Part shown: positions 34,375-43,045 of the stretch, one piece after another
How the letters are laid out: each line of letters opens with the position of its first letter
Position numbering within the stretch: position 1 is the stretch's first letter
NCBI RefSeq assembly: GCF_037042905.1
Contig: NC_087255.1
Span: 5,146,001 to 5,210,000, forward strand
Source: Lytechinus pictus
Lineage: Eukaryota
Direction: 5' to 3'
DNA length: 64,000 bases
Made by a program: the position numbers and the translations under genes
The notes under the pieces: model-generated
Told to the model about the DNA's origin: nothing
The model's input: only the letters and a program-made list of their open reading frames with translations
Database searches by the model: none

Positions 34375-34880
34375 CAGGAAGAAACATGTTCTCCTACATC
34401 GAAGGTCTCCAAGTTGTGAGCTTACCTGATACCGGACTGGGATTAACTGTGAACTGTCCAATCTTTCTAAACATCTTGGTTGTCATTGCGTCCCAGAGTC
34501 TTGGCACATGATCAGGCCATGGAGCTATTAACACAGACTCCATGATCAGACGGAACATCACTTTGAACAGGAATGGGTTATGTTTTCCAGCAACGGAAGT
34601 CTCCAAGTTGTGAGCGTACCTGATATGGACTGGGATTAATTGTATTTTAAAAATCTCCACAACTTTTCTTAACAAGGTAACATCCAAGCTTCTTGGCGCT
34701 TTATATGATGGAACATCACTTAGGACAAGAACAGACTATGTTTCCAACAAAGGATATCTCTAAGTTGTGAGCATACCTGAAATAGATGGGGATTAATTGA
34801 AATGTGTTCATCTGTTCTGAACAAGGTAGCATCCCAGTTTTGGGGGCAAATCGTCTGATGGATCTTCACTTTAAACACAC
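34375..34880. repeat. Old degenerate tandem repeat, ~3 units of ~157 bp
   Basis: TCTCYAAGTTGTGAGCNTACCTGA...GGGATTAA core, with AAGTTGTGAG at 34411, 34605 and 34762. Confidence 0.8.
34518..34544. mobile_element. 27-bp micro-insertion with CATGGAG/CTCCATG ends and 7-bp TSD (P-like footprint)
   Basis: ATCAGGC|CATGGAGCTATTAACACAGACTCCATG|ATCAGAC. Absent from the paralogous repeat units. Confidence 0.7.
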
Positions 34881-38042: not shown

Positions 38043-38370
38043 GGATGGATTGAATGAATGAATGGATGGATTGATGAGTGGATGAATTAGTGAATGGATA
38101 AATGGATGACGAATGTATGAATGAATGAATGAATGAATGAACAAATGGATGGATGAATGAGTGAATGGATAAATGGATGTATGAATGAATGAATGAATGA
38201 ACAAATGGATGGATCATGGAGCTATAGCTCCATGGATAGATAAATGGATTGATGAATGGTGAATGAGTGAATGGATAAATGAATGTATTAGTGAATGAAT
38301 GAATCGATGTTAGGATGGATGGAATGGTAGGCGGATCATGAATGAACGAACGAACAAACGAATATGAATG
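38043..38370. repeat. (GAAT/GGAT)n compound microsatellite
   Basis: Direct reading. It produces the spurious HSFIHSFI ORFs. Confidence 0.92.
38215..38234. mobile_element. 20-bp perfect palindrome insert (P-like footprint)
   Basis: GATGGAT|CATGGAGCTATAGCTCCATG|GATAGAT interrupts the microsatellite. Confidence 0.55.
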
Positions 38371-39985: not shown

Positions 39986-41758
39986 TAACCCAAAATAATC
40001 AATTTTCCTCATTTTAACACAGAATTGTACTAAATCAATATAAAAACAAAATAATTAGATAATACAAAATCGTAATTCTTAAGTAATGCTTGACTGAGCT
40101 GAATGTTCAAAGAATGCGATGGAAGAGAAATAAAACTGCATTAATGTGAAGTAAATAGTGATTATGTACAAAACGGAAAATATGATATAATGATAATATT
40201 TTTATCATTATCATTTTATTATTATCTAAAGCTAAAAGCTGAATTTTCAGTTCGATCGCTTCTCTCGCTCAAAAATAAAATTGGACCTTTTAAGGATCTA
40301 ATTAACATGTAAAGTTTACATCCCCTCATGTTCTCTTTTAAGTAATATTACTGCCTTCGGCAGCATTATTTAATTTACCTTGGAAGTAGGCATAAAGTTA
40401 TACACAACTTATTTGTCCCTTTGTATCCAAACGTTGGTACCTAAAATTTATTTGGCGTTTAAGAATTGTTTAAGAATTGTGTAAGAAAACAATTATTGCA
40501 GAGATAATGATATCTATTTTTATCATTATTGTTATTACTATTATTATTATTATCGTCATCATCATCATTGTTACGTTCAGGAGGAATCAAATCTTGTTTC
40601 ACGGTAAAATGAGGACTTTTCGATATCTTAGATATCATTTGATAAAAGACAAAAAGAAAATGAGTGACTGGCGTCATCGGTTTTATCATTTATGTACTGA
40701 CCATAATAGTTCACTGAAATTAAGCGATCTGTTACGTCATAATTTTCTTATGTTATATCATATTGACGATGTAACAGAACAATAACCAACAATCAATAAT
40801 AGGAACATAAGCATAAAAAGGCGGGGGGAAATGAAGTAAACGCAGTTTGGATCTGATATTTATGTGTCTCTATCAAACAATTTATAAACTTAGCTTTCCC
40901 GGTACACATCAAAATATTAGGGAAACATTTCAGAAAATATGCAAATTAATCTAAAGGTAACCAATGAACTGGAAAAGAAGATAGAACAACCCTGTAACTA
41001 AAATGTAAACAACTCAATTCATTGAAATAATCAATGAGAAGGAACGAATTGGATGATAATGCAGTGAGGTATGTTCAACATGTTCAAGAAAAGAACCAGA
41101 TGTGAAGACGGAAAGAATGAGAGCATCTGAATAGGGAAGTATTGAGGATGAAAATGAGAAGTAGGACAGTGGTTGATGCAAAATGATGAAAAAATAACAA
41201 ACGTATATCTATTGAAAACTGAACTAAACAACATACCAAACTGATGTGAACGGAATACCTGACTTAACTGAATACTTAAACAATCGAACAGCTAAATGTA
41301 CAAAGAACTTTACCACATCAAGGATAGCTCTTTGATAGGATGGACATGACCTTTGAAAGATGGATTTTGCTTTTATTTTTAAGCCTTGACGGGATCAGAG
41401 CACAATCATGGACACAAGACACGGTGTAGGGCCTACACCACACCGCATCAGGTATGACTGTATGATGTCGGATCTTCTACAGCAATCGAACCACTCCTAC
41501 ATAGTGTTTCCATTCTCCTGCTGTCGTACCGGGCGGTCTTGGGAGAGGTGATGCCAGGTGCCCGGTCTGCAGCTAGCAGCTGCTCTCAAAAATCATCAAG
41601 TTTCGATCTTGCCCTGAAATGACAGTTCTTGTCACAGTCATCAGGATCATGTGAAACACCGCGTGGGTCGTAAGAGGGAAACACCCCCTTCTCGAATAAT
41701 TTGCTGTTTTAAAAGTATAAGTATTTGCACCTTATGGGACCCGCGAGCACTGTCTTAT

Positions 41759-41807
41759 CAAGGAGATATCACCTGGAGATATCACCTCTAGAGGTGATAT
41801 CTCCTTG
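41759..41807. mobile_element. 49-bp inverted-repeat micro-element with 7-bp TSD (P-like footprint)
   Basis: GTCTTAT|CAAGGAGATATCACCT-GGAGATATCACCT-CTAG-AGGTGATATCTCCTTG|GTCTTTT. Confidence 0.7.
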
Positions 41808-43045
41808 GTCTTTTACTTCGTTTCTAAATATTTATGTTTTCAAGGGCTGGTCTATTTATCTTCTATTTTATTTATACATGTAGTTTTATACATTTATATA
41901 CACATTCTATCGTATTTATATTTTTTGTCGTTTAATTATATAATACCCTTATTATTTAAATTGACAAAAAGTGACGTCACGTTATCCCCCCCCCCCCCCC
42001 CCCCCCGCATCGGGATATGCTTGCGCCGACCCTGCGTATATAAGAATCACGATGCTCCTGCACCGGGTCGACGTCAAAAACCAAATCCGAAATTCTGAGA
42101 AAAAAAATAGGAGATGAATTAGTCCCAAAATCTTTAGATACAAATTAATTCGACCTTCATTGAATCAAGCGATCCAGTTTCGAAATTGATACATTTTTGT
42201 TCTCTGTCACTCAGCCCGCTCTAGTCATGATAGTCAGTGCTTGTTGTTCACTGCAACCATGCCTATGGGGAATCTACATATAGATCTCCATTTATGCAGT
42301 ACACAACACCATCTTGAAAAATATCTTTAAAATATCACTTTTTTTACCAAAAATACTTATTTCCATATAGTTGTGATTTATTTTTCATTAGCTACTTTGG
42401 TATCTTTTTTTATTATGTGCGCTCAAAAACTGTAATTTTGAGCATTTTTGTGTAGCCCATACTTGGTGGAAAGTAAAATTGCAAGAAAATTGTCATTTCA
42501 CAACCTTTTACTTTTTAATAAAAAAATAATTAAAAGAATTCGATTTACTCCGGAGCCACGTTATGATGAATAGTTGTACTGGAGACTGACAGTGTAAAAA
42601 AAATCAAGCAATTGTCCCCAAGAAGAAGGGAAAATAAGCCCAAAATTGCCAACCTTATTTCCCCACACAGGGAGTCCTAGTAACAGAGAACAAGGTTATG
42701 TCATTACCTTGTTCATTGAATGAGTGATTTTTCTTGCGACTGTTTAGGTTCCCAGAGCAAATTTAGAGATGGCGGGGAAAAACACGGTAAGAAGAGAAAT
42801 AGTTGAAAGGATATAAAAGAGAAGATGTGTTGAAAAAAAATATCTGTACGTAAATGCATTTCATTTAGAAATAAATTATTGTCCCCCACTTATTATTGGA
42901 AATTCTCCCTGATTTTTGGTACAATTCACTGAGATAAATAATCATATACCTCGATTTCCCAGTGGGAATATAGAAAAAAAAATGACCTGTGTTTATGACC
43001 TCATGAAAAACATTCTCTTTGGGAAAAAGCACTCTTAAAGATATA

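Follow-up and report, generated by a model that had tools for sequence, protein, structure and literature searches.

A palindromic scar in the sea urchin Lytechinus pictus that probably records excision of a P-superfamily transposon, with an extra copy of the transposon end

In this work, we describe a 49-bp palindrome in non-coding DNA of the sea urchin Lytechinus pictus, at positions 41759-41807 of the stretch of 64,000 nucleotides that was analysed as a whole (hereafter, the window). Most probably, at about 80% in our estimate, it is the scar left by the insertion and later excision of a cut-and-paste transposon of the P superfamily, closed by a repair event that added an extra templated copy of one transposon end. 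Events of this kind are ordinary in this genome, which holds several hundred such scars, and the one described here keeps an extra copied transposon end. The new elements of our analysis are a second family of termini in this genome, the link between this family and a transposase-bearing copy, an orthologous empty site and two natural cases in which a transposon arm was copied again.

The scar begins with the left copy of the target site duplication (TSD), GTCTTAT (41752-41758, forward strand), which follows a GTnnnAC-type target preference at its first, second and sixth bases. It is followed on the same strand by the left arm CAAGGAGATATCACCT (41759-41774), corresponding to bases 1-16 of the transposon terminus, the same 16-mer that opens the transposase-encoding copy. 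Next comes a 13-nt insert on the forward strand, GGAGATATCACCT (41775-41787), an exact repetition of arm bases 4-16, which together with the three bases after it (CTA) reproduces arm bases 4-19. At the CTAG centre (41788-41791), arm bases 17-19 (CTA) of both ends meet and overlap at TA. The right arm, on the reverse strand, consists of terminus bases 1-19 inverted (41789-41807), and its stretch at 41792-41807 reproduces the 16-nt left arm in reverse complement without any difference. The right TSD copy, GTCTTTT (41808-41814, forward strand), agrees with the left one at six of the seven positions, the single mismatch falling where A is preferred. All of these parts had been located correctly in the initial annotation, except that the right arm is longer than first described, 19 nt.

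Allowing up to two mismatches, the 16-mer is found three times in the window, always at the scar, against a chance expectation of 0.03, and thus the arm pattern at 41759-41807 is not due to chance. The perfect palindrome comprises the inner 30 bp (41775-41804). Its single-strand fold is strong (-17.1 kcal/mol, z = -7), what is trivially expected for any palindrome, and it may also extrude a cruciform, as suggested in the initial annotation. The open reading frames around the scar are short and have a low sequence complexity, and hence none of them was assigned to a gene.

Both flanks of the scar (41350-41750 and 41815-42250) are single copy in the genome, with only the inner ~35 bp recurring elsewhere, and the 49-mer occurs once among all 44 two-armed items of at least 37 bp. 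The scar is therefore not included in a larger repeat and is not a micro-MITE either, the two alternatives that had been named at the outset as arguing against an excision reading. Further evidence comes from contigs of a related genome, 8-10% diverged, that cover small shares of the window and probably derive from a sister species. Three sequencing runs (X1, X3 and X4) provided contigs colinear with the window on both flanks and bridging 41744/41750 to 41814. The X1 contig omits 69 bp and inserts 13, the X3 contig omits 63 bp and inserts 7, and X4 has the same join seen as a loose end. In each of them the net loss is exactly 56 bp, that is, the 49-bp scar plus one 7-mer, and a single 7-mer is left, TTTTTAT in X3 and X4 and ATTTTAT in X1. 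Because the 56 bp are absent and one copy of the 7-mer is present, these contigs represent the empty site that had been anticipated; they document a formerly empty site and not a present-day polymorphism.

Compared with these contigs, both TSD copies of the window share G1 and C3, as would fit the duplication of a single target in this lineage. On the left, GTCTTAT agrees with the preference for A at position 6 and with the ..TAT of the outgroup, and it was probably the right copy, GTCTTTT, that changed after the duplication. Contig depth reaches 400-1,600 at 41776-41809, against ~30-70 on the flanks, indicating that the palindrome is abundant in the related genome as well. In a fourth run, X2, the orthologous contig has 307 bp at 41750-42058, including the scar site, replaced by 204 unrelated letters. 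The related genome and the window differ in structure at this point.

In the 812-Mb assembly of L. pictus, the 16-nt arm was found 474 times (243 and 231 on the two strands), against four (3 and 1) for the reversed control, and hence it is a motif of a repeat family. The termini of this family read CAAGGAGATATCACCTCTAAC. Two terminus subfamilies, ...CACCTCTAAC and ...CACTCTAAC, which differ by one base in length, could be distinguished among the 87 places listed.

One copy, L055 (G000:C2, with the element on the minus strand and ATGACAT as its flank), begins with this terminus and has open frames ~465 nt inward from it in the same orientation. The largest part of these frames matches the Pfam TNP-like RNase H N-terminal domain (PF21787, 2.7e-23), and the same part matches the solved Drosophila P transposase (PDB 6p5a, 3.8e-8). 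A paralogue, L060, 50% identical, matches 6p5a at 2.7e-13, in an alignment that includes the characteristic SD..S.N.K and D.PHL.K..RN stretches. The first 66 and ~120 nt of L055 recur in two other copies, with similarity starting exactly at the terminus; moreover, the L055 flank is itself a repeat whose other copies cease to match at that same point. The terminus is therefore a true boundary of the element. With a transposase homologous to that of P and TSDs of 7 bp, the length also known from 1360 and Galileo (8 bp in P; PMC3698922), the source of the scar qualifies on sequence grounds as a P-superfamily transposon. The P-like assignment made in the initial annotation is thus backed by a transposase gene attached to the terminus and by the 7-bp TSDs.

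Transposase-like loci above 50% identity number only ~3 in the genome. The L055 copy is a truncated relic, in which no right end was found within 14 kb and no GTP-binding insertion domain or RNase H C-terminal domain downstream. Eight one-ended candidates for a complete element, extended by 10 kb, revealed neither a right end nor a recurring TSD, and no element complete at both ends was recovered. No match to a THAP domain was obtained in the transposase copies examined.

The N-terminal part of L055 (L055:9165-9536:-, G000:C2, ~44.359 Mb) matches the Pfam family RAG1_imp_bd, from the RAG1 N-terminal region (PF12560, 9.8e-7), and the N-terminal part of L060:1498-3306:- matches the same family at 1.5e-3. 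There is also a weak match of this module to the solved RAG1 N-terminal fragment 21wb via H..RL..CR.CG and S.HP..C..C. These similarities raise the prospect that the module may be of the 'N-RAG-TP' type, described from the sea slug Aplysia (PMC8355894), here on a P-superfamily enzyme.

What the family has left behind was examined first in a sample formed by the first 45 loci fetched (L001-L045), which correspond to ~40 unique places. At 27 of these ~40, a piece of 21-43 bp, in which a variable junction connects the left arm to the right one, lies between direct repeats of 7 bp that differ at one position at most, and six further loci have the same form with the end or the TSD mutated. Longer DNA continues at only ~7. 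Genome-wide, a pattern of 12 terminus bases, a gap of 0-30 nt and seven inverted terminus bases gave 484 strand hits, against none for the control. Allowing for palindromes counted on both strands, ~350-400 places hold joined termini; independent scars are fewer than this, since some were copied along with other repeats. Over 40 junction types, with total lengths of 20-38 bp, were counted in an approximate hand tally of the 87 places listed, as would be expected of footprints whose junctions had been predicted to vary.

Among 22 non-redundant junctions with clean TSDs, 13 (~59%) have an overlap of 1-3 nt, four have none and five (~23%) carry 1-5 nt of filler. Identical junctions were found at L013, L019 and L023 despite their different TSDs; the 36-bp palindrome occurs at the TSDs GTTCAAG, TTAGAAT and GTTTGAT, and both terminus subfamilies make an analogous join. 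Such recurrence is expected if microhomology steers the joins. The target consensus over 40 loci is GTnnnAC (G in 19, T in 31, A in 32 and C in 23), a palindromic preference which suggests that the target is recognized symmetrically by a transposase dimer.

Identical 36-mers and 38-mers at many places, with inverted ends and 7-bp TSDs, could also be taken as a micro-MITE, with the 49-mer or its 36-mer core inserting as a unit. We regard this explanation as almost certainly wrong. The 49-mer is unique in the genome, and all the 38-mers and six of the 36-mers (those with TSD GTTTGAT) share TSD and flank, so they are single scars carried inside other repeats. P-type transposases of Drosophila, moreover, require binding sites located further inside the element than the termini (PMC7776569). 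The more than 40 junction types are deleted at the centre, down to 20 bp, with their outer ends intact, what is unlike the decay of a MITE. Identical short units with unrelated flanks and different TSDs were sought in the genome and were not found in quantity.

In the 38-bp scar, a ...CACTCTA end contributes 18 nt and a ...CATTCTATC end the other 20 nt. This scar is present at 41 places at least (e.g., C1:1483724-1483761), including a 3.7-kb tandem array on C22, always with ATGAAAC on both sides and with two point variants. It is one scar hitch-hiking in a larger repeat.

A transposase-free origin has also to be considered. In the 'nearly precise excision' of bacterial Tn10, replication slips across the hairpin into which the terminal inverted repeats fold, and remnants of these repeats are left behind. 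Many of the urchin junctions lie at overlaps of 1-3 nt, as slippage would produce, and the arms are limited to the terminal ~21 nt, which could simply be the length of the inverted repeat. Nevertheless, about one-fourth of the scars carry filler, one of them telomere-like, and the 37-, 41- and 43-mers join near-full arms with no overlap or with 2-3 extra bases. Blunt and filler junctions between near-full arms point to the joining of a double-strand break rather than to slippage, and we consider the latter very improbable.

The telomere-like filler belongs to a 54-bp scar (G000:C13:16998065-16998118) with a perfect TSD, ATTATTC. Its 19-21 nt of filler contain AGGGTTAGGGT, which resembles two TTAGGG telomere repeats; it is possible that telomerase acted at the break or that telomere-like DNA was captured.

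The arms of the scars are short and sharply bounded. In the sampled loci the longer arm measures 16-22 nt and never exceeds this, even though 66 nt of the reference arm are known. It never extends past CTAAC (21 or 20 nt, the next T being ambiguous), and in ~100 scars the arms stop sharply at 20-22 nt. These limits are consistent with excision tails of ~20-21 nt in this family, to which they point indirectly. The initial annotation had equated the arm length with the 17-nt overhang of P-type excision: the short, bounded arm stands, whereas the length of 17 does not, because the arms reach 20-21 nt.

The events behind the window scar may be pictured as follows. A P-superfamily element would have inserted at a GTCTTAT target, duplicating 7 bp, and its transposase would later have excised it by a long staggered cut, so that the chromosome retained single-stranded 3' tails, non-complementary to each other, with ~20-21 nt from each terminus. 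The break would then have been closed by end joining instead of copying from the sister chromatid. The usual product of such a joining would be the 36-bp palindrome, in which TA at bases 18-19 of both tails anneals (19 + 19 - 2). At the window scar more than one round of synthesis seems to have taken place. On the simplest path, one tail, primed by TA on the other, would have used it as a template as far back as base 4 (14 nt) and then dissociated, perhaps driven by the ability of the new 33-nt tail to fold on itself into a 13-bp hairpin. The new tail would finally have been extended on the opposite one, shortened to 16 nt, and joined to it with no microhomology. Such a product has the order seen at the window scar, arm 1-16, arm 4-19 and inverted arm 19-1, with an extra 13-nt direct copy.

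An alternative in which the 13-nt copy owes nothing to the repair deserves attention, namely an ordinary 36-bp scar formed first and a 13-bp tandem duplication added later, by replication slippage or another small duplication. The 49-mer is indeed equal to the canonical 36-bp join of the family (19 + 19, with the TA overlap) plus one exact 13-nt tandem unit, and palindromes this strong can stall replication. In addition, the identity between insert and arm, as read from the sequence, runs for exactly 13 nt, and the left edge of the insert is devoid of microhomology, what does not favour repair synthesis primed by microhomology; slippage, however, usually needs flanking microhomology too. A later duplication is further weakened by a second scar (G000:C37:222549), with a perfect TSD, GTATTAC, in which the whole arm is present twice as a 19-nt re-copy. 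The second arm copy begins immediately after arm base 20, exactly at the inferred end of the tail, and in this case the last G of the growing strand would have re-primed on the C that ends a 20-nt tail. This re-copy supports both repeated synthesis and the proposed tail length. Together with the filler common across the scar family, it indicates that synthesis during repair is a recurrent outcome, and we therefore judge the later duplication unlikely and retain a templated insertion made during the repair.

Two other sources for the 13 bp were tried and rejected. For a nested second insertion, no split of the 13 bp into a 7-bp TSD and a remnant gives terminus-like bases. Snap-back (inverted) copying of the arm, which is a near-palindrome, would have introduced two mismatched bases, whereas the insert is a direct repeat free of any difference.

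The junctions of the window scar can be compared with the products of the synthesis-dependent form of end joining mediated by microhomology (SD-MMEJ) and of joining by polymerase theta, with which they share an exact copy of adjacent sequence forming a direct repeat (PMC2943611, PMC2895639). The 2-nt TA overlap at the right junction of the insert and a pattern suggestive of repeated short synthesis also fit. The SD-MMEJ model demands a primer repeat (PMC2943611), however, and at the left junction the overlap is 0 nt, so that in the strict sense the 13-nt copy falls outside the model. Its template also differs, being an unwound duplex in SD-MMEJ and, in our interpretation, the single-stranded tail of the opposite end at the window scar. 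Of the earlier suggestion that the insertion had been copied from adjacent sequence, in the manner of polymerase theta, the copying holds, since the insert is identical to arm bases 4-16 beside the break; the suggestion fits less well at the left junction. A theta-type polymerase may have been the repair enzyme.

Among the closest known systems is Drosophila P, whose transposase is homologous to that of the urchin family. P transposase cuts with a 17-nt stagger and the donor keeps non-complementary 3' tails of the terminal repeats (PMC7776569), which in flies are joined by short overlaps and templated inserts, partly dependent on polymerase theta (PMC2895639, PMC7776569). The footprints from the P{wa} assay (PMC2895639) are much like the sea urchin scars: the TSD is kept on both sides, up to one full single-stranded tail is kept per end, the joins lie at short microhomologies inside the tails and inserts are often templated from the tails. 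The urchin family differs in its 7-bp TSD, against 8 bp in P, in retained arms of up to 20-21 nt, against 17, and in the transposase copies examined, where no THAP domain was seen, unlike in P. Besides, the urchin scars are natural, germline and fixed in the lineage, while the P{wa} junctions are laboratory isolates. Elements such as 1360/Hoppel and Galileo combine a P-superfamily transposase with a 7-bp TSD, as the urchin family does, but they are insect elements with long or foldback terminal inverted repeats (PMC3698922).

The case reported here is a single scar, and its value is that of a clean example, with TSD, both arms, templated insert and empty site. It also offers an entry point to a family whose scars, at a few hundred places, far outnumber the surviving copies, of which three were found. 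Such scars record where a P-type transposase cuts and how non-complementary 3' tails are joined in the germline of a non-model animal. Both the cleavage geometry across the P/THAP9 superfamily and the range of alternative end joining that occurs in nature could thus be read from genome sequence alone. A literature search with partial coverage returned no report of such scars in sea urchins.

We tentatively extend this into a broader proposal, to which we give somewhat less than even odds. The scars would form a natural archive of germline break repair, and the urchin branch of P would cut 20-21 nt in, right after CTAAC in both subfamilies, unlike the 17 nt of the fly. The cut would be set by sequence and not by distance, since both subfamilies end after CTAAC even though they differ by one base in length. 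In the same proposal, the transposase would carry a RAG1-N-terminal-like zinc module in the place of THAP, thereby putting an 'N-RAG-TP'-type module on a P-type transposase.

Some features of the window surroundings may be added. A TGACGTCA palindrome and, after it, ~21 consecutive C occupy 41973-42007, 170 bp downstream of the scar and just upstream of a TATA-like motif near 42038; the contigs of the related genome, in all four runs, break at 41978-42017. This stretch and the TATA-like motif could be a candidate promoter, which would fit the preference of P elements for promoters.

Two other scars in the same window, at 34518-34544 and ~38216-38235 (within 34511-34551 and 38208-38241), belong to a sister family whose termini are CATGGAGCTAT. 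This family shares with the present one the genome, the 7-bp TSD and similar termini (CA-W-GGAG-M-TAT), but it is a different terminus family; the one described here is that tied to a transposase-bearing copy.
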